DNA of 63,712 bases, filler included, from Perkinsus chesapeaki ATCC PRA-425 (lineage: Eukaryota; Protista; Perkinsozoa): NCBI GenBank assembly GCA_013115145.1. It is 6 parts of 6 records of this genome, joined end to end, with 100 filler letters (N's around TTAATTAATTAA, not from the genome) between each part and the next. Parts side by side here need not be neighbours in the genome. Positions count along the whole stretch, not along the records: positions 24,087 to 47,658 come from JAAPAO010000561.1; 5 more parts are not named here. One strand, written 5' to 3'. The position numbers and the translations under genes were made by a program. Below are positions 24,087 through 38,100 of the stretch, one piece after another. Under the pieces are notes generated by a model. The model saw only the letters and a program-made list of their open reading frames with translations. It made no database searches and had not been told where the DNA came from. Position 1 is the stretch's first letter. The number at the start of each line of letters is the position of its first letter.

Positions 24087-24099
24087 CGCGAGTGTGTTT

Positions 24100-24370
24100 A
24101 GGTCACCCCACTGGCACCTTCGTTGGTAACACAAGTCTGGGTGCAGTCACTGTGGCGGTCACGGCTTTGTTCGCTGAAACCGAGACTGTCATCCAGGAAC
24201 TGTAAGACCTTGGTTTTTGTTCATGTTTCGAGGTTTCACTTTCAGGAATGTCACGCTGACGGGTCTGAACCTGCAACTGCAAAATATCCCATACAACATG
24301 GAGGGTTCGAAAATAAATATCACCGATTTCTCGGCTATCCCCGAAACCTACAGGGCATTGATTGAAGGTG
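24100..24370 (+). CDS. Internal exons of a hypothetical protein at the contig start
   Basis: GNTSLGAVTVAVTALFAETETVIQEL, GTAAGA donor, then NVTLTGLNLQLQNIPYNMEGSKINITDFSAIPETYRALIE followed by a GTGAG donor. Confidence 0.3.
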
Positions 24371-25161
24371 AGGCACCGCTAGTGGGTTTCGTTGTTATTC
24401 TTTATCTTAGGGGCATCCTTGACATATGATAGCAGCGCCGAGACTATCACCTTCTCGATTCCTGCCCCTCCCCTGTCGGTTGTTCTACACAAACAATCTT
24501 CCCTCAGCAACATGCTTAGGCGTCAATGATTTTCCACTTTCTCCCCACAAAGCGACGAGAAAGTTTCTCGGAGAAGCTTATTTCTTTGATTTGCTACCTT
24601 CTCGCCTCAGGAAAGTTGGGCGCTCAATGCTATAAGGGATAGCTTTATGTGCATGATTTCCAGAACTGCCTTAGGAGCAGTGTGGTACATCATTATGATA
24701 ATACGTCATTACCGTTGTATTAGTCGTGTCGCTTGTCATTAGAGTGTCAAACATTCATTTGTTCACCGTTTTCTATACAGCAAGTATTTCACTATGAGTT
24801 GCGTTTAGCTATTGGTCCTACAGTATACTATGTTGGACATAGTGGCAGTTGAGGACGGTGCCCATTCACGGAAGTCGACCGAATCTCTTTAATCGAGGCG
24901 CGTCAATCATCTCATACCATATATTCCTTAAACCACTGCTGGTGATTCATCAGTGATGAAGATGAAGCTGATGAAGCTACCCCACTGTGGGGAAGCTTCA
25001 TCTTGAGCGAGCGCCTTGACGCCTCAAGATGGTTCCCGGAATGGAAGATTGTTGGCCTGAGAGCCGATAACTTGTGATTCTTAGTGCGAATGGTCCAAGT
25101 CACTCTGTCAAACTCCGATTTCTTCTCGTCATAATATGACGGTCATATAAATTGAGGCCGT

Positions 25162-25650
25162 CTACATGGTCATCGTCCCATTTGAGAGATGCTCCGGCAG
25201 ATCTCGCACGATCTCCGCTCCAAGCTGCAGATTCTGCAGTGCAGATTCTTCGACGCCATCCAAAGCTGTGAGAGCCATGGACTCTATCGCTTTAGTCGCA
25301 GAAACGACCGTCCCATTGAATCGCCTGCAAATTTCGCTTCGAATGCCAGCTAAAAATGCGGCAAATTCCTCGTACATCGTATCCAGCTCCGACAACCCAC
25401 CCCTCTTCGATGATCTGGCTCCTACCACCTCGAATCCAGATGATTGGAGGTTCTCGACTATCCCCTCAACCTTTGGGGCGATTTCTTTCCTTCCACTGAA
25501 TGAATCGATGCACGCGAGAAAGCCCTCCCTTGACAGCGCAAGCTGTGCGAAGTCCACCGTCGATGCCTGTAGCATCCTGGCGAAATTGCTCGTCGCCTGT
25601 AGGAGTAGGTCAAGCTTCACAAGACACTCGATCGTAGTTCGCGTGAGCAT
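25162..25650 (-). pseudogene. Probable hAT-type transposase fragment
   Basis: LLQATSNFARMLQASTVDFAQL resembles the hAT motif L-Q-x-x-x-x-D-L/F-x-x-A. Later SEICRRF. No catalytic N-terminal region is visible. It lies next to an element with terminal inverted repeats. Confidence 0.4.
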
Positions 25651-26107
25651 GAAGATAACACACCTTAGATGAGGGAGCCTGCCGTGGTGGAGTCCCGCTC
25701 ATCGGCCTATCGGCCGAGTGCCGAGGCTAATAGACCACAAATACCACACCACTAATACGGACCACCCTACTCAGACCTACTTCCCAGCTTTTTGCATGGA
25801 AGTGTATTATAAATTTATGGCCACCAATACTCTTACCTAATGTGAAGTCAGGTCATCGAAAGTTTCGTTCGGGTCGCTAGATTAGGTGCCATCCCTCCTT
25901 ATTGCTTTACCTAACTTCTATGAGATATACTGTCAGCAGATTCGTGATTCTCCAACTCAGTGTAGGGTCTGTAATGAAGACTCTGTATTAGCTGTTCTAG
26001 ACTAGAACTTCTGGTGTTCTGACAACGATATCGACGCGGCGTCGACGACGCCTTCGATGAAGTTACAATCGTCCGATTGTAATTGGTCGCTCAATTGGAC
26101 GAGCGGC

Positions 26108-27003
26108 CTGGAGCCCGTTCAAGTGCTCAACTGTTCCGAGTTCCGAGTCTGAGTAACTAGCTCCGAGTTCCGAGTCCGAGTTCTCCTAATCCGAGTACTT
26201 CTGTGTTCAAGTGCAACAGCTCGGAAAGGAGGGTATTCCGAGATGTTTGGCTGAGTACTCAAACTGGGTTTCTAATCGGAGTGTTCAAGTGCGTGTTCGA
26301 TTTCTTAGTAACTACTCGGAACGACATCCCTCACTACGAAAACTATCCTTCACTTGTTTATTTGCCGAGAAGTTAACTCAAGGACTAGTTTCTTTCAAGA
26401 TAGAAAAACTTGCATAAAACCTATTACAAATATATCATTCTACTAATATACCTAAAAAAAGTACACACGAAATTCACACAGACAAATTTTTATATGTCAT
26501 ACGTTTCATATTACGGAACATATCATATGGTTATCGTTACAGGCTGCAAGTTTCACCATACTTCTTTCTTTTTTGAGTGGTACCGGTCATAATGAGCATT
26601 ATTTGGCTTTCTAGATGAATGAAATGTGGTGGAACTGCATTATTTGAGTCGATCGTAAAGTGCCCGTACTTATCCTATATCAGTTACGTAGGTAGTGGGT
26701 GATTTCCAGACTGGAAATTCCAGTCATTGAAGGTGCTTTGTGTTACGGGGGACTCGGAAACACTATGTGTTCGCACTCGGAGCGCGAAGGGAGTGTTTCC
26801 TAGTGTTTTGCGAGCACTTGAACAGGGCACTCAGAAGATCTACCCGAGTATCTCGGAATTGTGCTCGGAATGGCTTCTCTGGATACTCGGAATCGGGGTA
26901 CTCGGATGAATGGCACTTGAACAGAAAATTTTGTTCCGAGCTCGGAGGGGTCACTTTTCTGAGCATGTGCGCTCGGAAAAGTGGGCACTTGAACGGGCTC
27001 CTG
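26108..27003. mobile_element. Non-autonomous DNA element (hAT-like MITE) with terminal inverted repeats and subterminal repeats
   Basis: Left CTGGAGCCCGTTCAAGTGC and right GCACTTGAACGGGCTCCTG (17-bp perfect core). Three GTTCAAGTGC/GCACTTGAAC copies per side, many CCGAG/CTCGG motifs, AT-rich core. No target-site duplication seen. Confidence 0.7.
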
Positions 27004-27136
27004 ATCTCGAACGCGTGCTCTCGAGCTTACGCGTAAGTCTCTTACCTTGTCGCCGACAAGTTGTCGGTCAACTGAGACCATCCCAGTGATTCACACTGAA
27101 TCACTGAGTGAATCATTCAGTGAGTCACAGACGGTG

Positions 27137-27179
27137 ACTTTTGTATTGTCACTGTGACTCACAGTGACAATACAAAAGT
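27137..27179. repeat. Near-perfect palindrome, 20-bp arms with a 3-nt centre
   Basis: ACTTTTGTATTGTCACTGTG-ACT-CACAGTGACAATACAAAAGT. Confidence 0.9.
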
Positions 27180-28073
27180 AGTTGGCATTATTCAGAAGTT
27201 ACCCCCCTATCAGGCTCGCTGATGCATGGGTCAACAAGGGAAGCCAGAGATACCCTTTTGATTGTTCTTCTCTCATTCCGGTCACCTTTAGCCTGCGTAG
27301 CCAGTAAGTAGTGTGTGTAGTTCAGCGTGTGCAACTCTCGAAGGTGAAGTCAGTACTTAATCGATAGTTTCAGAAACTCGCAAAGTATAAGAGTTTCGTT
27401 CGAAGTGTCAAACGTGGGCGCGTATTATCAAACTTGCCCGCTTGTTGTCATTCTTGGATGAGATGCTGTCAAACTTAGACTCGGTTATGAATCAAGTTTA
27501 TGTCAAAGATGAATGAATATTGTCACACTTGGACCCGATATTTCACACTTATTCCGAAAATGAATACGTATTGTCATTCTTGGAAGAGACATTGACATTG
27601 TTGCTTGGACATTTGTCGTTGCTTGTTGCTTGTGCGCTCAAGGCCCTTGAGCGCAAGTCACCCTTGAGTCAAGGGTGTTGCGGACGCGGTTATCTTGAGA
27701 GCTTACCAGTTACCGTCATTTCAAAAGTCGTGTTAGAATGCAAAGACATGCTACATATTGTGAAGTCCACAAGGGCATCTTGTGAATCGTATCGTGCTGC
27801 GAACATGGCAGATGTCTGCATACCGTATCTCACTGAAGAGCAATGCTTCCCCGAATACGGAATAGATCAACGCAATCTGCTCCTCATCATGAGATGGAGG
27901 GTATATTTATTAACCGCATTGAAAGCATGCAAGATGTGAGAATAACATCTATATGGGATAATAGATCCTTTTAGTTACAGTAAGGCAGCATTACTAATGC
28001 TTAACATCTTCACCCAACAAAAGGAGAAAGCCAGCAAAAGCTGCCTTGTGTAGGAAGCCGTTCACTTGCCAGA

Positions 28074-28804
28074 CTATTTCACAATAACGTCGGCACAGGA
28101 AGCATAATAAATACCTTTGAACTGCCACATGTGATAAACAGTGTAGATGGCAGGAGTCAGATGACGGGGAATCGTAATATCGGCAGATGAACAGTCAGCA
28201 GGATCAGTCTTATTATAGAAAGGATGGCACTCTTCTAAAGTAGTGAAGTCATCAAAGGAAGGATCAGCCTTATATGGTGCAATCTTAATCTGTACACAGG
28301 TGCCTGAAATACCAGAGAAATAAAGGGCTTCCGGTGAGTTGTAGAAGTGCTACCATCAGATTGATAATTGGTGTGTCCATTTCCCATCCAAGAGATATGG
28401 AGCGTACCACCTGATGATCATAGAAATGCCCCAGAAACGCGGAATGTAGACTAGCTCATGGTCACCTCTGGTCACCTCGGCGCGGTTGTCGGTGTTAGAA
28501 GCCCCTTCGGAGCCAGCTTTCCTGCAAGGCCTCTGGGAACTTGTATTTAAAGGCTTGTATGGTGGCAAGGGGTCACGGCACTTGCTAAGATCCAACGGGG
28601 ACGGGCAGATTGGTCGCTGAAAGAGCGAAATGACAAATCAGATCAGATGCCACTTACCGCATAATATTCGTCCGGGTGATCATGAGTTGTTTCGCCCAGC
28701 CTCGGCAAACCGCCTTTAATGTCACCTTTGAGTTTGAAGACCCAAGTGTGACCAGCGGCTTCGGGGACGATGATAAGCATAACAATGACGACAGCGGGTT
28801 TCAT
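28074..28804 (-). CDS. Secreted histidine-brace protein, LPMO-like (4 exons, 194 aa)
   Basis: Exons 28804-28658, 28616-28466, 28410-28354 and 28303-28074 join in frame with GT-AG introns. Product: MKPAVVIVMLIIVPEAAG/HTWVFKLKGDIKGGLPRLG...RAEVTRGGTLHISWMGNGHTNYQSDGTCVQIKIAPY...ITIPRHLTPAIYTVYHMWQFKGIYYASCADVIVK*. Signal peptide then His1, a second His in WxxNGH, and a C-terminal YxxCADV. The gene model is well supported; enzymatic activity is inferred. Confidence 0.75.
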
Positions 28805-29119
28805 TACAATTGTTATTTGACAACCGCTCTATGTTAACAATCTAAAGTTGCTACCCGATCGAAGCAGGATGGATGCGAGCAGTTTCAAACGGTTGCCGAG
28901 TGAGCGCGCCGAGCTGTCACATTAGGTGTCACCTTCACCATGTCACCAAAATGCTCTTTCCCGCGTGACGATCAACACTCCAACAAAAGATTCCACTGTT
29001 AAAACTAGAATCTGTATTAAGGTACAGTGAGCAGTCTGCATTCACTCTTCATTACTCCACTATTCGGCCATCTCCTGCCGCTCTTCACGCCCATCGGATC
29101 TCCTATGTCACTTCTCTCA

Positions 29120-32100
29120 TCACCGAAGCAATCGTGGGCCAATGCCGCCATTAGACAGTTTAACGGCCAGTGTATAAAATGATTCCAGCTTCTCGGAATC
29201 TGTCTTTCCGAGTGCTTCTCGAGCACCCCTCATCAAAGCCTGCGCCCGATCCAGACGGCGAGAACCGAGCAGGAAAGTTATGGCACGAGACATGGCTTCG
29301 TACACTTTGGCCTGGTCGAGACCACGCAAGAATTTGGTGATTCTCCAGCAACTTTCCGGAGGATTTCCGCCTGTGACGAACTCTAGAATCTCTTTGGCAA
29401 TGTCGGACTCATCAACCTGCTTACCCGGCAGTCCATCGCTGACCTTGTCGTCGATAACTTCGGGTGCGACCAACCGAAGAAGATGCCCACGTTCGCTTGG
29501 CCGCACATACACCGTACACGCGCTCGCGCCTTGCCCGAATAATTCAAGTACGATTTCCTGGAAACTGCGAAAAGATTCCAAATTGTCAACCTCCACAATC
29601 TCAACTTCAAGATCATGCTTCGACCTTGGATACTTCTCGAGACGCCCTCTTACCCCCGCAACTCTGACGCTATCACCAAAGCGCGCTTCGATCGAACTCA
29701 TCATTCCCTCAGCAGAGTTGGCCCGAAGAACGATTTCTTCGAGAGACCGCATGCCAACCCCTCGCTTGCTTTGTCGCTCAACCTCCACTTTTTCGTGAGC
29801 CGGCGAGTTAGGGCTCGCACCTTCTCGGGGGCGCTTTCCGTGACGGGCGAAAAATTGGCCAAGTCGCTCCTGCTGACGCGCACGTGTCTCTTTTTTCTTC
29901 ATCTCTTGAGCGTACTTCTCCTCAAGCCCAACTGGTGGGTACAAATGAACATCTGGCAGCTTTCCAAACTTTGCCGCATCAACGACCCACTGTGGGGTGA
30001 CCACCACATAACTACACATAGTTCACATTACACTTAAACATGCTAACCGAAATATCTATTATTGGCACCAACGATTTCCAACACCTTTTAACGCCTATAT
30101 CCGAAATAGGCTTGCATAGTGAGCCCATTTCGGAAGGCTTACTATGGCTTAAATAGCAAGACTTACTCTTGTCAAAATAGTATTTCGACAATAGCAACTT
30201 CTACTTCGACGGCGACATGACCACACAGAACGCACAGGTTACATTTAGGGAGTCATCTAGCCCCTTAGGAACTGGTTGTTCCCCAGGGACGGTAAAGTGT
30301 TCCTAATACGAAGATATGATGGAAGAAAATGATCGATGACTATAGATGAAATATTATTAATTAAATATTAGACAGAACGTTCGTAGCCATAAGGGAACGT
30401 TAGACGCATGCCTTCTGGAAGCGTCCGATTGCACCCTATCTGGCTCGGAGCCATTGGCTCTATTGCCACTAGAGCGAGATCGAACTACCTAGGCGTAGCG
30501 CATGACCAACTCTCATTATACTACCTCTTTTCTAGTCAGAGTAGAGTCATTGTGCTGGTGATAAGTGTTCGCACGCATGCTCTGCGCATGCGTTCACCAT
30601 TGTAGTTGTACGCAAGCACAATATATACCCTTTTATCTACTCTCCCTTGTTAACTCATGAGTCGTGTTCAAGAGCAGTCCAGCAATGGTGTGGATGGGCA
30701 ACATATTGGCGACAGCGGCAGGATCAACGACCCAGCATCATCCTCCATATCACTGCAGGATCTGAAGTCTGCTCGAACGGTTGCCAGACGCAATCGCACT
30801 CGACTCGCTAATGTGCTTAAGCGCGTGAAGGCCGACATTGCCAACTACCAAGAGTCCGAAGACCTTCCAGAAGGTGAAGAAGATGCTGAGTACGAGTCCC
30901 TCCTCTCGAAGGAGGACTCCTTAGAGAGCCAGCTCGCAGACGCCGAGGTTGCTGTAGCCGAGGCTGAGCGAGCCGTGGATGACCAGCTGTTGGTGGATGT
31001 ACAGCGCCGCCTTCCAGCCCCCACGCTCCTGACGTCGGGCCTGGCACAGCAGGACCCAGTCGGCCATCCCGACGTCACTGCAAGTCCCGTGGCCAGTCTT
31101 CAGGGGCGCCGTCAAGCTGCCACTCCCCGTTCGGCGGGTTTGTCTTCCAACACTGCCCAGTCGAATGATAGTGTCAGCAAAGTCCTCATCCCCAAGTTGG
31201 CTGACCCTTACAACTTCGTGAACCACTTGAACATGTTCTGTCGTATTATGGTTGATCATGGCCATGGTCGGTTCGTCGACGGTGCCTTCGTGCCTTCGGG
31301 CCAGGAGACGTCACTGGTCGTGAAGCTGGTCAAGTCTGTTGATAAGTGTGCCAGCCTCCATCAAGCCGCGGAGAGTGCCGCTCAGACCTCCACCTATCAA
31401 TGGGGGCCGACCGTGGGTTCTCTCGTTCGTCAGTTCGGGTCTAAGGAGACAATCCGGACAGAGGTGGCTCGCAAACTGAAGAATTTGAAGTTCCAGTCCG
31501 TAGGTATGGCCGAGGCGTTCAATCAACAGCTGACTATCATTGGTAATTCTTGGTTCTCGGTCTACGGGAGTGAACCCGCTGAGGTCCGCTTTCTGGCCGA
31601 CAACTTCCTGAGGAAACTTCCGCCCGATGTCCTGAAATCCCTTACTTCGCACATCCTGGCTCTCCTTCCGCAGGATGCGATTGCGAGGTGGGAGAACCAT
31701 CTTCAATTGCATGAAGACGCTCCACTGCCTACCTCATCGCCGTCGATTTGCCTTACTACGGCGATCGCTACCGTGTGCAAGTCCATAGAGATTGCCGAAT
31801 CCCTCGGAGGGACGGCCTCCGTCCCTGGGTTCAGGAGGTTCGACAAGGTCCATCGGGTTGGAGATTCCTCTAGCCCAACTCCTATTTCGGACTTTGTGTC
31901 AAAACACGCAGTGGGCTCTGTCATGTACTTCCGTACGGACCGGACGGACATAAGTGATGACTCGCTTCAGGACCACTTCTCGCGGCTGGGTTCTAAGTCC
32001 ACGATGGTACTCCATCACCCCCGTGGGCACACCTATGGTTTCGCTGCCTTCGACGATGCGACTCGTATGGAGTCTGCAATCCCAACAGCCACTTCTGAGG

Positions 32101-35100
32101 CACTTGGAGTCACTGCTCGCCGTTATGAGAAGCCGGGAAACGGCGGGGGGCCCCGTTTTGGCCGACGTCGGTAGGCGTCGGGGCCCTTAACTCTCTCACC
32201 GACCCTAATTCAATAACTACTGCAATTGGTTGTAATATCTTCAAAAATGACACCATTGATTGTAACATTGTCTTGAAAGATGGCTCACCTTTGAGGAGCA
32301 GAGCCCCAATTCCTTCCGCTGAAGACGAAGGCTTTATTGATGATATTGTGCAAGCATTTTCTTCTACCAGTTCGTCTCTTCCTGAGATTAGTTTCCGTGG
32401 GCACCTTGAGGGTGTCGAGGTTCAGTGCGTAGTTGACTCTGCGTCCGGCTACTCGTATATAGCCGCCTGTGACGTTGGACGTCTTCCCGTCACACCCGTT
32501 CCACTCGACCAGCCATTCCAGGTTCGAGTGGCCAATGGAGCTGTCGTTAAGGGCTCCAGTGCCGTGTCTGGCACGCTTGAGCTTTTTGAGCTCAGCTCAG
32601 CGGCGGTCGTCTGCCGCCGCCCTATTACTTTACGTGTCCTCCCATCAAGGGGCACGCTGGGATCGTGTGGGTTGCCTTGTCTCCTACTAGGCCGCGATCT
32701 CATGGACTTAATGTCCTTACAGGTGGAAGCCCGGTTATGCTCTTATAAGGGCCACACTCTCTATCAATACTTTCCTACAGTCGAAGAATTGGTGAGATGT
32801 GCCCGTCTTGACGATCAACTCTACCATCTCTGCGAGCTAAATGGTAGCTGGTTGCGGGCTATTTCGCCAGTTGGTCACTCACCGTCGTCTGAGGACCTGT
32901 CTGTCTATGTCAATCTACCAGTATCGAGCCAAACTCGGGAGCAGGTGGCGGAGTACTGTCGATCCCTTGGTCAGCGGAAACCCTTCCGTCAGGACGAACG
33001 CGGTTATTACTCCGAGCTCGTCCCCCTCCCAGTCGAAGACCTCGACCGGTTTCCAGAGTACCAGGAGTATTGCTGGCAGATCTGCTGCCCCCAACCCAGC
33101 CGGGTTCGGCAGGGCCGACAGTATGCCGTCAAGAGCTATGCTAAGCTGACTAAAGAGCAACGCTCCCAGTACCGTGAGCTCGTCGACACCTATGTTGCAC
33201 GGGGCCATTGGACGCCCCTCACCACTGCCCCGTCCAATGCTGCGGCCGAGGTTTTTCTCACCGGTACGGAGAAAAAGGGCAGGTTGGTTTGTGATTTCCG
33301 CCCTCTCAATCAAGCCCTACCTAAGAGTTCCACCAATACCACCTTCATTCCGGTCCTTATGTGCTGTTTGCGGCTACTGCGACCAGCAGTGCTGATCTTT
33401 GCTGACTGCCACTCTGCATTTTATATGCTCCGGCACTGCTTGCATGAGGGCTGCCTCAATAGCTTAGAGATGCACACTGGTGATGACAAGTACTTCTCGT
33501 CTAGCCGAGTCTGCTTTGGCGTAGTCCATGGTCCTGAATCCCTCGAAGAGAGCCTTGGGCGCCAGGTGACCACGGTCATTGAAAAACCACCAGTGCCTGT
33601 AGAGCAAGGGGGTATTGCTGAGTTCGTTGATGATCTTACCGTTGCCCTGGGGCCGGCAGACTTGGCTGTGGTTGGGCTTTTGCTATCGACCCTTATCTAC
33701 TTTCTGGGGATTTGTGGGTTTCTGGTAGCACTGGCCAAGTTCTCCATACTGGTGGTGGATAGCGAGGCTCCAGAGTTGGCTACTTTGAAGCCATTCATGA
33801 AGCCAGAAGCTTCCATGCTCGGGGTCAAGGCGTCGTTCAAAAGCGGTTGCCTTTTCCTACAATGCGATCGGACTGAAAGCTTACAAAGTGCGCTCAGTAT
33901 CCTTTTGCGTGAGCGTTGGACTAAGATCGCTATCTATGCCGTTTCTGGCGCGCTCGGCCACGATCCCTTAGCCCTGCATGGTGATATCAAGCCCTTATGT
34001 GATGCAGCACGGCGACTTTTCGGCTCCGTCTTCAGCAAAGTCCCATGGTCTCAAGCGCTCGGTCATGATGATTTCTCTGCTGAACAGTGGAAGTGCTGGA
34101 TGGAGATCCACTCCCGTTGGCTTGATTTCATCAACATGGCTATTGCTTCCCCTTGTGAGCATGTTATGCCCCTAGCCGAAGGTCGCCTGCAGCTCATTCT
34201 ACAGACAGATGCCAGCGCTTCGGGAGCGGGCGTGTTCATTGGACAGTCCAATGAACACGCCCGCTGAACAATTTGGACTCCGGCAACGGACGGGTGAGAT
34301 ACTGCCTTTGGTGAGAGATGCCTGCTCTTGGACGGCTCTCCAACAACGGTACCACTCAAACCGTCGAGAAATGCTAGCCCTCTACCGTGGGGTCTGTTGG
34401 CTCTCGCGTATACTAGTACAGCTGAAGACGATGTCCTTCAGCACCTCTCCGGTGGTTACAGACCCTCCTATTATCCAGTCCGACAACCACAGCACGGTGC
34501 GATGGTGCTTATCGTCTTGCAGCACCTTGAAGTTCACTGCGATTGAGCGGCATGCCTTGCACAGGATTGCATCTGCTCTAGGTAATGAACTCTTGCAGAT
34601 CCGTAAGATCTGTGGAGGATATGAAGTTATGCACCTTCCAGGAGTTCAGAACGCTGCGGCCGATGAGTTGAGCCGGGTCCTCAGTGTGGGTGTGAAGGGC
34701 CAGTTATCATTGCCTTTGTTCCAGCTGCTCAACCACGCAACGGGTTTGAAGGAGTATCCAGCTGCCGACGACTTGTTCGTGCTCGCGGAGGTGTTAGGAT
34801 CGTCAGAAGTCCACGATCTCTGTTTCGAGTACTGTGGCCCGGGCTGCTCCCGCCCGCCTTCTGGAGAGGCCGCTCTCGGCGACCAGGAATGTGCCGCACC
34901 AGATGCTGCCACGCTTTATGTCCTCCAGCAGGTCTGCCCCGAAGCGTCATTCATTCTTCAGGAAGAGGACTTTGTGGATCGGTGTTTTACCCTGGAAGAA
35001 GAGCCCGAAGATGCATCTCAAGGACATCAACCTCAGACGGAGTCATACTTGGTTAGAAGACTTGGTAGTGACACCTGGAGCATAGACCAGGCCTGTCGAA

Positions 35101-38100
35101 GTATCTCCGTCTTGCGCTGGTGCCTGGATGCCTGGTTAGTCGCTGCGCGGGACAAGACGCGCCGTGGTCCCCGGTCGAAGGACTTCCAGCCCTTCCCCCG
35201 GAACTGGACTAGGGAAGACCTTCTTGTTCTCCTGCGCGCGGACCAGGGCGGCAACTCGGCAGTCTGCAGCCTGCGTGAGAAGGGTTTCTCTGAACCCTAT
35301 TACGATATTGATGGTCTGGTGACCTTCCGCTCTAGTCTCTCTAGTGGGGCGGTGGCTTTCCGCCCGTTGGTCAGCAGTTTGATCCGTGATAAGCTTCTTC
35401 GTGATGTCCATCGAAGTCATGGCCACTGTGGGGTAGATTACATGTGCGGAAGGGTAACTCAGGGATTCCATGCTCAGCGCCTTCGCTCTGCCGCCGCCCT
35501 TATAAAGCAGCACTGCGTCTTCTGCGCGCGGTTCTGTGCGTCGTTCCCAAAGACATGGACGGTGCCTTGTGGAGGCCCCTTCTTCGACCTAGAGAGTTTG
35601 ATGGCTCTCCCAGCCTACAGTGTTGTGGGCATCGATTTCCTTTCCTTAGCACCCAAGGTCAAGGTCTTGGCCGTAGTCTGCGCGGCGACAAGACACTGCT
35701 CCCTGTTCTACACCCCTCAGGAGAACTCGCACTGCTCCTTAGCTGCCATTAAGGAACTGTGCCTCTTGTTTGGTCGGCCCTTGTGTGTATATTCTGATCG
35801 TGCCAGCTATTTTCGGAGCTCCTACTTTCTGGAAGGGCTCGAGAAGATGGGCATTCAGAATGTTCACTTGGCCTCGCGCTCCCCATTTGAGGGTTCCCTC
35901 TATGAACGTCGCAACCAGGAAGTCCGACGGCTTCTCCGCTTCTTTGAAGAACTACCGGTGGTACGCCGTCTTCTTGCTCACTTTGATGCTTCCTCGGTTT
36001 CCGATGTAACCTCTCTGCGACGGCTGTTGATGGAGATATCCCTTATTATGAATCAAAGGCCCTTGGGTATCAGCCGGTCTGGGGAGGATGTTAATACTAT
36101 ATGCCCTGACAGCTTATGCTTTGGTTATACTCGTCGCACTGACCAGCTCAGTGAACCCCTGTTTGAAGTACCGAATAGACCTTCAGTGGTGGATGAGGGA
36201 GTTCCTCAGGCAGGGGTGGACATGGTTATCGATTCTGCCGCTGTGCGTCGAGGTTCTACAGGTTATCTTCCTCTGGGCGCTCAAGGCTCCCCGCCTCAGC
36301 GCTTCTCTGCTGTTAGGAATTCTTTTCTATCTTATCATTTTCAGTGGTTGAGGGATCGCTCTACCCGAAACGTCGTTCGCGGCGTGGCGAAGGCTGGTAA
36401 CGTCTCCATTCACTTTGATGAGGGCGACCTAGTCTTTGTGAAGAGTGGTAAAGTCATTTACCCGGCCAGGGTAGTCCAGACCCTTCCCGGCTCGGATGGT
36501 GTTGTACGCCGCTTGCGCGTGCGCAATAGCAAGTCGGGACACGAGTCTACGGTGTCTCACCACAATGTTGTCAAGTCGTCTATTGAGTCGTCGCTGCAGG
36601 ACTAGATTATGTTCGATCTGGGGGCCGTTTATATTGCCACTAGAGCGAGATCGAACTACCTAGGCGTAGCGCATGACCAACTCTCATTATACTACCTCTT
36701 TTCTAGTCAGAGTAGAGTCATTGTGCTGGTGATAAGTGTTCGCACGCATGCTCTGCGCATGCGTTCACCATTGTAGTTGTACGCAAGCACAATATATACC
36801 CTTTTATCTACTCTCCCTTGTTAACTCATGAGTCGTGTTCAAGAGCAGTCCAGCAATGGTGTGGATGGGCAACACTCTCTGTATAAATTCAAATATTCGG
36901 CAGACTTGATACAGACACAGTATATGTGTCAAGTCTGTCGAATGTTTGACTGACTATAATCGTTAGTGTATCATACACAGTATTGACACATGATAATGTT
37001 ATGATGATCCCCAGAATCCCGCAACTCTCATACCGTCTTTCCGCCGCCAGTTCCCAACCAACCTCCGGTCCCTCCCTTTAAGGTCGGTAAGTTTCCTCCA
37101 CGTTTGGTTCCCCAGTGCGACTGCGCTCGCGATGACATGCGTGACCGATCTCATGCCGTATTGGTGGTACTCTCCACCATGGCTGGTTACCAGACGTTGA
37201 ATCTAACCACCACGTTCAGCCCGGACAGCTTCCCGTTTTAATCAGCCAGCAGTATTTCGACCAACGCTTATAACGGACCGATTGATCAAGGCAATCGCTC
37301 GACTGTGCAGCCATCCCGAAAGACTCATTCGTCTGCATGAGGACAAGCTTTTCAACTCGAGGAGATTTCACTCGACACCAAGGTGGGGCGTGACCGACAA
37401 TTTCCAGGTAGATATAGGGACTCATCTGGCTCACGGAGATATGCTCCTCGAGGACCAAGAAGTGCTTCTGATGCGGAAATTCCGTTTAGGAAATGAGGAC
37501 AATTATTGATAGTGATTCGGAAACAAGATACTCCCTAAATACGGATCTTATATCCTTATATGATACTTTCGAGGGAAAACTTCCCGTGCATTCCTCCTGT
37601 CAACCTTATTCTGCATCACACGAAGTTTGGGTCAAAGTTGGAAAACCATTTTCCGCATTACCCTTACCTCCTCCTCACTGGACCCTTCCATCCGCCCTGT
37701 CAGCCAGAACGTAAGTCCCTTGAACACATCTCCTCCGCCACCACCACCTTTCCGACCTTCAGCTTCGGAACAAGCGTAGCGTTCTTGGTAACTGACCTAG
37801 GGGATACATCCAGCTCAATGCAGACGCCATAGAAGAAGGCTCTGAGAATCGATCATCCTTTACGGCTACGGTGTTAGGAGGTCATCACTTGCATATGTTG
37901 TAAAGTGAACAAGTCAAGGTGACGTGAATATGCTGGCATCTGGGAGATATCTTTCCCTCGTTCAAAACTGCCCGAAGACTCACAGGACACTCTTGCCGAA
38001 TCCCTCACCGTTTCAACAACTGCTTCCGCTTCTCCATAAGATACTCCCTCTCGCTCTGCCACCCGCTTGAGGAAGGCGCTCGCATGGAAGCCTCGGCAGA

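Follow-up and report, generated by a model that had tools for sequence, protein, structure and literature searches.

In the clam parasite Perkinsus chesapeaki, a gene of four exons encodes a probable secreted, histidine-brace protein resembling lytic polysaccharide monooxygenases

Overview

The window considered here is a stretch of 63,712 nucleotides (nt), filler included, composed of six parts of the genome of Perkinsus chesapeaki ATCC PRA-425 joined end to end, of which positions 24,087 to 47,658 come from JAAPAO010000561.1. On the minus strand of this part, from position 28804 to position 28074, lies a four-exon gene whose product of 194 amino acids (aa) is, as the best explanation of the whole, probably a secreted histidine-brace protein of an uncharacterised family, similar to the lytic polysaccharide monooxygenases (LPMOs). 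The gene is real and is expressed in this clam parasite, and the agreement between exon joining, cDNA and the exon plan of the homologs goes far beyond chance. What has been shown comprises the gene model, the RNA support for introns 1 and 2, the conservation and the predicted fold. It is considered very likely that the product is a copper protein with a histidine brace and the LPMO fold; that it is a true polysaccharide-oxidising enzyme is evenly balanced. A secreted, single-domain LPMO-like protein in an alveolate had been proposed in an earlier, sequence-only reading of this DNA, and conservation, fold and profile scans agree with that proposal.

Gene structure

The spliced frame (28804 to 28074, minus strand) has 585 nt and encodes 194 aa, with three introns that are all of the GT..AG type. 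The features of the locus are as follows, in the direction of transcription.

28829..28843, minus strand: two alternative spliced-leader acceptor AGs (28843-28842 and 28830-28829), placed by cDNA 5' ends
28805..28841, minus strand: 5' untranslated region of 37 or 24 nt, according to which acceptor is used, the mRNA body lying just downstream of the AG
28658..28804, minus strand: exon 1, 147 nt, from the spliced translation model and an identical cDNA
28804-28802, minus strand: start codon, in exon 1
28804-28751, minus strand: putative signal peptide of 18 aa, in exon 1, hydrophobic leader MKPAVVIVMLIIVPEAAG
28750-28748, minus strand: codon of His19, predicted first mature residue, in exon 1; HTWV followed by a G-x-P-R motif
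28617..28657, minus strand: intron 1, 41 nt, GT..AG, phase 0; cDNA joint 28616/28658 in three runs
28466..28616, minus strand: exon 2, 151 nt, with C53, C62 and C80, three of the six conserved Cys
28411..28465, minus strand: intron 2, 55 nt, GT..AG, phase 1; 55-nt skip in three runs
28354..28410, minus strand: exon 3, 57 nt, with the W-M-G-N-G-H motif; cDNA reaches 28370
28375-28373, minus strand: codon of His112, in exon 3, within SWMGNGH
28304..28353, minus strand: intron 3, 50 nt, GT..AG, phase 1; paralog cDNA and the same intron in homologs
28074..28303, minus strand: exon 4, 230 nt, with C121, C144, Y-T-V-Y-H-M-W and C188-A-D190-V
28106-28104, minus strand: codon of Tyr185, putative axial residue, in exon 4
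28076-28074, minus strand: stop codon TAG, in exon 4, placed by homology
27690..27832, minus strand: extra terminal exon of the GenBank model KAF4657077.1, judged not to be part of the gene, its tail having no counterpart in homologs

Retranslation returned the four exons, the GT-AG introns and the 194 aa free of stops that had been read from the sequence alone, at identical coordinates. The SWMGNGH motif and the C-terminus (...IYYASCADVIVK) described in that reading are both present in the spliced translation, and the 18-aa leader ends, as it had stated, in AAG directly before a His. The gene had also been called hidden. This holds for the bacterial-style list of open reading frames (ORFs), which contains only fragments because the gene is a split eukaryotic one, and not for GenBank, where it was already deposited as a hypothetical protein. 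The same plan has been found in relatives: the paralog FOL47_008220 (L001:3001-3729) has four exons of 144/151/57/233 nt and intron phases 0/1/1, and PMAR011619 of P. marinus (L002:3001-3720) has four exons of 144/148/57/233 nt with the same phases. In both, the introns measure 41-52 nt and introns 1-3 follow the plan of the gene studied here, FOL47_008617.

RNA evidence and the spliced leader

About one quarter of the sampled words of the region are held by four public RNA libraries (marine metatranscriptome label, 454, RT-PCR), three of which were aligned to positions 27000-30200 together with the species-labelled run X5. In three libraries, cDNA contigs of 384-398 nt span 28843 or 28830 to 28370 with 0 mismatches and omit exactly 41 nt (28617-28657) and 55 nt, corresponding to introns 1 and 2; the 55-nt skip carries a 3-nt placement ambiguity, with the GT..AG placement 28411-28465 among the options. 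Introns 1 and 2 are demonstrated by these cDNAs. As for intron 3, a paralog cDNA from the same libraries, with a loose end at 28368, reads ...GHTNSVSDGTCVQI through the equivalent junction (SDGTCVQI). Splicing, for which the sequence-only reading had looked to RNA, is in this way matched by 0-mismatch cDNA at introns 1 and 2, and by homology and paralog cDNA at intron 3.

The cDNA 5' ends lie at 28843 (contig X1) and at 28830 (X3 and X4). Their unmatched 5' letters read, in reverse complement, (G)CCGTAGCCATTTTGGCTCA, and the genomic AG comes next; (G)CCGTAGCCATTTTGGCTCA plus AG is the 22-nt dinoflagellate spliced leader as quoted in PMC9399869, where the leader of P. marinus is reported as a TCTT variant. 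The libraries are RT-PCR products, and for that reason the leader is possibly in part primer-derived and its TTTT is probably that of the DinoSL primer. The position of both leader junctions on genomic AGs is compatible with true trans-splicing. Two other origins of the gene were considered and rejected. A core dinoflagellate source, suggested by the TTTT leader, is excluded by the protein identities, the TTTT being most simply that of the DinoSL primer, and a fungal contaminant, suggested by the short introns and an AA11-like motif, is excluded by paralogs in three Perkinsus genomes and by the spliced leader.

Expression is not confined to this locus. Several family members of Perkinsus are abundantly transcribed, since many high-depth paralog cDNA contigs share exon 3 (28370-28412, minus strand) at 90-99% identity; upstream of exon 3 these cDNAs diverge (...NTAFRAEVTR... 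versus ...NTDNRAEVTR...).

The GenBank model and the 3' end

The gene is annotated in GenBank as FOL47_008617, hypothetical protein KAF4657077.1, of 228 aa (P0042 in our protein set), which is identical to the 194-aa model over residues 1-181. The GenBank model has the same first three introns, followed by an intron of 282 nt (28114-27833), and 47 unrelated residues take the place of the last 13 (G-I-Y-Y-A-S-C-A-D-V-I-V-K). If it were correct, the mRNA would splice 28115 to 27832 and the 228-aa protein would have neither the Y-x-x-C-x-D strand nor a functional histidine brace. The GTATTT at 28114 is usable as a donor, an AG precedes 27832, and the part from 28115 to 27832 is uncovered by read data. 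The model is nevertheless regarded as highly improbable. Its additional intron exceeds the others of this gene and of its relatives 5-7 times in length, and in all other family members, two in the same species included, the frame stays open through the conserved strand and ends at a stop shortly behind it. Moreover, Cys188 is lost, which leaves one conserved Cys partnerless, and the tail matches no homolog. A fold prediction of the GenBank protein is confident over residues 19-181 (block means of 78-92 in pLDDT, the predicted local distance difference test), whereas tail residues 183-214 stay at 27-33, and the mean falls to 73.5, compared with 89.6 in a paralog model described below. The four-exon, 194-aa model is the better one; the 3' end of the GenBank model is wrong and looks like an annotation error. 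The GenBank protein also bears, as UniRef100_A0A7J6LCU9, the name 'Protein arginine methyltransferase 10'. No methyltransferase-like sequence was recognised in this protein or in the downstream ORFs (24087-28070), and the name looks spurious.

Conservation and distribution of the family

With exon 4 as the only query, a search of 1.8 billion representatives finds 40 homologs (best E=1e-26), and the closest proteins belong to P. chesapeaki, P. marinus and P. olseni. An alignment of 37 domains (A1) was made, and conservation was counted in a wider set of 68 domains, with the numbering of the 194-aa protein.

His19: 58/58 sequences reaching the N-terminus
Ser/Thr20: 58/58 (Ser 57, Thr 1)
Trp/Phe21: 58/58 (Trp 51, Phe 7)
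Arg35: 63/64
Trp107: 67/67
Asn110: 66/67
Gly111: 67/67
His112: 66/67
Position 185: aromatic in 64/64 (Phe 36, Tyr 28), Tyr in the 194-aa protein
Asp190: 62/65
Cys 53, 62, 80, 121, 144 and 188: 64-66 of 65-67 each

His19, His112 and the aromatic residue 185 are thus essentially invariant over the 68 homologous domains, and conservation of the two histidines was a point on which the sequence-only reading had staked its proposal (58/58 for the first, 66/67 for the NGH His, 64/64 for the aromatic residue). In addition, all 29 members with an intact N-terminus start with a hydrophobic leader of 13-23 aa that ends in G, A or S right before H-[ST]-[WF].

Beyond Perkinsus, where it is duplicated, the family extends to diatoms, to further marine protists and to a nemertean. 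In a maximum-likelihood tree, a long branch leads to a 100/100 clade of the nine named Perkinsus proteins and the metagenomic P0041, which is assumed to be perkinsid; within this clade the 194-aa protein branches first. Two paralogs of 194 aa stand in tandem, about 1.8 kb apart, in JAAPAO010000514.1 of P. chesapeaki (L001:3001-3729 and L001:5522-6248), which indicates a local duplication of the family within this species; the pair adjoins a protein kinase gene. The nemertean member, XP_064626874.1 of Lineus longissimus (P0085, 299 aa), is encoded on a 25.6-Mb scaffold and has a very long branch in the tree.

Domain architecture differs along the family. The Perkinsus proteins are single-domain, and in most members outside Perkinsus Ser/Thr/Pro linkers lead to one, two or three Cys-rich repeats of about 45 aa (C...G..SYCK.W..D.CGR..C.G), found at the C-terminus of P0002, P0004, P0005, P0011 and others. 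These repeats gave no match in Pfam or in PDB sequences; they may be an undescribed carbohydrate-binding module. In the diatom Skeletonema marinoi, KAK1735218.1 (P0006/P0054, 713 aa) has an LPMO-like domain at about 19-193 fused to a GH16 glycoside hydrolase, a fusion that links the family to polysaccharides.

Predicted fold

The AlphaFold model of the paralog P0001, built from A1, is an all-beta sandwich with a pLDDT of 89.6 and a predicted template-modelling score (pTM) of 0.84; P0001 is 68% identical to the 194-aa protein over residues 1-181. Foldseek found 71 matches in the PDB at E<=1e-3, of which the best 50 are all LPMOs or LPMO-like (AA9, AA10, AA11, AA16), and VIA-align gave Z scores of 9-11 to AA9, AA11, AA10, AA16 and X325. 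A wide search independent of Foldseek placed TdAA15A of Thermobia domestica first (Z 11.7, whole chain), followed by AA11 (10.7), AA10 (10.4) and AA9 and, at lower ranks, by AA13 (9.5), X325 (9.2), AA16 (9.1) and AA14 (8.6). All 23 chains with a Z of at least 8 are LPMO or LPMO-like, and generic sandwiches come next at 7.5 or less; the beta-sandwich anticipated by the sequence-only reading is therefore both confidently modelled and matched at that level by this superfamily only. In LPMO chains numbered from the mature N-terminus, residue 1 lies opposite His18 of the model, which is the His after the leader. The neighbours of the model in AlphaFold DB and ESM Atlas are AA9, DUF7492 and 'chitin-binding type-4' proteins.

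Family assignment

The sequence-only reading had left room for an uncharacterised family, and the profile scans agree with this, since they reach no AA or Pfam threshold. For AA9 (PF03443), relatives score 12.5-17.6 bits against a cut-off of 27.8, the exons give no match, and only two of the 37 A1 members are touched at E<=0.01. LPMO_10 (PF03067) has no match at E<=1 in the 20 members scanned, nor at E<=0.01 in the 37 A1 members, and BIM1-like (PF20238) has none at E<=1 in the members scanned. Exon 4 finds no match among PDB sequences with phmmer, and the NCBIfam scan is equally without a match.

The only Pfam model that recurs is DUF7492 (PF24320), which touches 22 of the 37 A1 members at E<=0.01 (best 4e-7). 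In the Pfam scans of single exons it was the sole match. Exon 4 scores 13.0 bits and the GenBank protein 14.9 bits, compared with a gathering cut-off of 27; non-Perkinsus relatives reach 25.5 bits in individual scans, and two relatives carry PF24320.2 in precomputed annotation. DUF7492 comprises uncharacterised, mainly ascomycete proteins, and its clusters in AlphaFold DB and the Atlas share the fold, although only the C-terminal third aligns and the 194-aa protein remains at 13-15 bits. No mention of DUF7492 was found in the literature searched, and membership of it would therefore confer no function.

Among the characterised families, the protein could be a divergent member of AA15 or AA11 that oxidises chitin, with nothing new at the family level. 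TdAA15A of AA15 (5msz) is the best structural match, with 148 residues aligned and model residues 18-194 on chain residues 1-194, and AA15 proteins are secreted with an N-terminal His after the signal peptide, as is predicted for the Perkinsus protein. The terminal aromatic-x-x-C-x-D-[VI] strand is AA10/AA15-like, AA15 having aromatic-x-x-C-A-D-I/V at this place, and the N-terminal motif H-S-W ... G-x-x-R looks nearer to AA10, AA13 or AA15. UniProt automatically names the P. marinus relatives 'Chitin-binding type-4 domain-containing protein', a label of the AA10/AA15 type, and the match behind this name was not reproduced with current Pfam. AA11 (AoAA11 of Aspergillus oryzae, 4mah/4mai; AfAA11B, 9exj; Z 10.7) is in turn the only characterised family reached by the sequence profile, which finds 4mah at E=0.0027 and 9exj at E=0.0045 over 112 and 37 profile positions. 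The blocks brought into alignment are the second His, G-[ST]-C-x-V, Y-T-L-x-W-x-W and Y-x-x-C-A; in the alignment GNGH falls within one residue of the second His of AA11, and [YF]-S-S-C falls on the Y-M-N-C that contains its axial Tyr. AA15 sequences from 'Alveolata' have also been reported (Sabbadin et al., 2018; PMC5823890).

Membership of AA15 or AA11 is, on balance, quite unlikely. No AA10 or AA15 chain appears at E<=10 when the A1 profile is run against PDB sequences, and LPMO_10, presumably the Pfam model that detects AA10 and AA15, touches none of the members in either scan. TdAA15A is 13% identical in the structural alignment, and AA15 has Ala, not Asn, at the second position ahead of the second His; the conserved Cys number ten in AA15 (PMC5823890) and six in the Perkinsus/diatom family. 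AA11 differs in being fungal and in an N-terminal region that is not alignable; its E-value is marginal, and its Glu before the axial Tyr is replaced by Ile or Phe. With Z scores that differ little among AA15, AA11, AA10 and AA9 (11.7 to 10), the protein is about equally distant from each and not nested in one of them. To our knowledge, the W-x-G-N-G-H signature differs from those of the characterised families. The 194-aa protein, about equidistant in structure from AA15, AA11, AA10 and AA9 and weakly AA11-like in sequence, is accordingly filed here as an unclassified branch of the LPMO superfamily, a member of no AA family, distantly linked to DUF7492.

Proposed mechanism

The following steps, from the cleavage site to copper binding, catalysis and substrate, we infer from the features described above. 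The 194-aa product would enter the secretory pathway, and cleavage after Ala-Ala-Gly18 would leave His19 at the N-terminus. Through its amino group and imidazole, this residue would then form a histidine brace with His112 in the W-x-G-N-G-H loop. A single copper ion would be held there, on the flat face of a beta-sandwich stabilised by disulfides among the six conserved Cys, and Tyr185 of the last strand (Y-x-x-C-x-D-V) would lie beneath it. If the chemistry follows that of characterised LPMOs, the reduced Cu(I) might react with H2O2 or O2 and oxidise a glycosidic bond of an insoluble polysaccharide at C1 or C4. Catalysis is favoured by the nearest structures, which are catalytic chitin- and cellulose-active enzymes, and by relatives with GH16 or putative binding repeats.

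Several observations weigh against this interpretation. The folded model is that of a paralog and not of the exact 194-aa protein. Exon 4 is without read support, no listed RNA run containing it, and therefore the stop at 28076-28074 rests on homology. No curated Pfam or AA family threshold is reached. The Asn two residues before the second His is invariant, whereas AA10, AA11 and AA15 have Ala there. Two residues before the axial Tyr, the AA11 alignment shows Ile or Phe where AA11 has Glu and where AA9 has Gln; judged from the alignment, a catalytic residue known from the second sphere is missing from its customary position. No carbohydrate-binding module occurs in the Perkinsus proteins, and both this and the displaced Glu/Gln weaken the case for catalysis.

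Some of these features would also suit a non-catalytic copper protein with the LPMO fold, similar to fungal X325/Bim1, whose role would be to capture or buffer copper, either on the surface of the parasite or within the tissue of its host. LaX325 (6ibh/6ibi) has the LPMO-like fold and a histidine brace, is small and lacks a carbohydrate-binding module, and it matches the model in structure at Z 9.2-9.3; X325 is defined by an additional Asp as copper ligand. BIM1-like domains occur in one of the neighbour clusters from the Atlas. The single-domain, module-free Perkinsus proteins and the lack of the Glu/Gln normally found two positions ahead of the axial Tyr fit such a role, and the invariant Asn110 and Asp190, near the brace residues in sequence, could be extra ligands. 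A 2026 review states that the histidine brace does not predict oxidative activity (PMC13353379). On the other side, the BIM1-like domain gives no match at E<=1, and X325 has a C-terminal extension of the GPI (glycosylphosphatidylinositol) type, whereas the chain of 194 aa stops with the last strand, 6 residues past Cys188, and carries no hydrophobic signal there. The Cys-rich repeats or GH16 of the relatives are as in carbohydrate-active enzymes, and the closest structural matches are the catalytic AA15 and AA11. A purely copper-handling protein of this kind is held to be unlikely, somewhat less so than membership of AA15 or AA11, but to be a serious rival all the same.

The wider proposal is that of a new family, at the level used by CAZy, of catalytically active LPMOs shared by Perkinsus, diatoms, other protists and a nemertean. 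Its signature would be a mature H-S-W, W-x-G-N-G-H and F-x-[YF]-S-S-C-A-D-I. In Perkinsus the binding modules would have been lost and the genes duplicated and abundantly expressed, and the secreted oxidative enzyme would attack chitin or glycan matrices of the mollusc host or else the resistant wall of the parasite itself, the latter during the change from trophozoite to zoosporangium. This proposal is put forward tentatively and with some doubt.

The substrate is a matter of conjecture. Mollusc hosts and thalassiosiroid diatoms make chitin, and chitin, of the host mollusc or of the parasite's own wall, has a slight edge over beta-glucan or cellulose because the AA15, AA11 and AA10 neighbours are chitin-active; a beta-glucan or cellulose target in the wall of the parasite itself is just as conceivable. 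Since free-living diatoms also have the family, an ancestral role in remodelling self or environmental polysaccharide is more likely than one in host attack.

Genomic surroundings

A 299-aa ORF (29120-30019, minus strand) ends 316 nt upstream of the start codon of the LPMO-like gene, on the same strand, and has no Pfam match; the two could share a transcript resolved by spliced-leader addition. Further upstream, three consecutive long ORFs of 505, 664 and 798 aa occupy 30657-36605 on the plus strand. The last of them matches an integrase zinc-binding domain (E=6.6e-5) and the rve core (E=1.1e-4), both below the Pfam gathering cut-offs, and this region, which lies some 1.8 kb upstream of the gene, probably represents a retrotransposon.

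Significance

LPMOs are central to the oxidative breakdown of chitin, cellulose, starch and pectin, and in bacteria, oomycetes, fungi and insects they are known to contribute to virulence or development; Perkinsus species, for their part, cause major diseases of oysters and clams. The sequence-only reading knew of no characterised alveolate LPMO, and none has been characterised as far as we have seen. The idea of LPMO-like genes in alveolates is, however, not new: such genes were already listed when AA15 was described as a eukaryote-wide family reported from algae, oomycetes and Alveolata, the last among the unicellular algae of Figure 2 (Sabbadin et al., 2018; PMC5823890). Perkinsus is absent from the text and the examined supplements of that paper, and no paper treating LPMO and Perkinsus together was found in the literature searched.

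The public gene model is corrected by this work, and a set of 'hypothetical proteins' gains a testable name. If the interpretation as a secreted histidine-brace protein holds, Perkinsus would have a duplicated, expressed and secreted copper oxidase that is a candidate for attack on the host matrix, for wall remodelling or for copper handling. The presence of the same family in bloom-forming diatoms, fused to GH16, would in turn point to an uncharted oxidative route in the turnover of marine polysaccharides.

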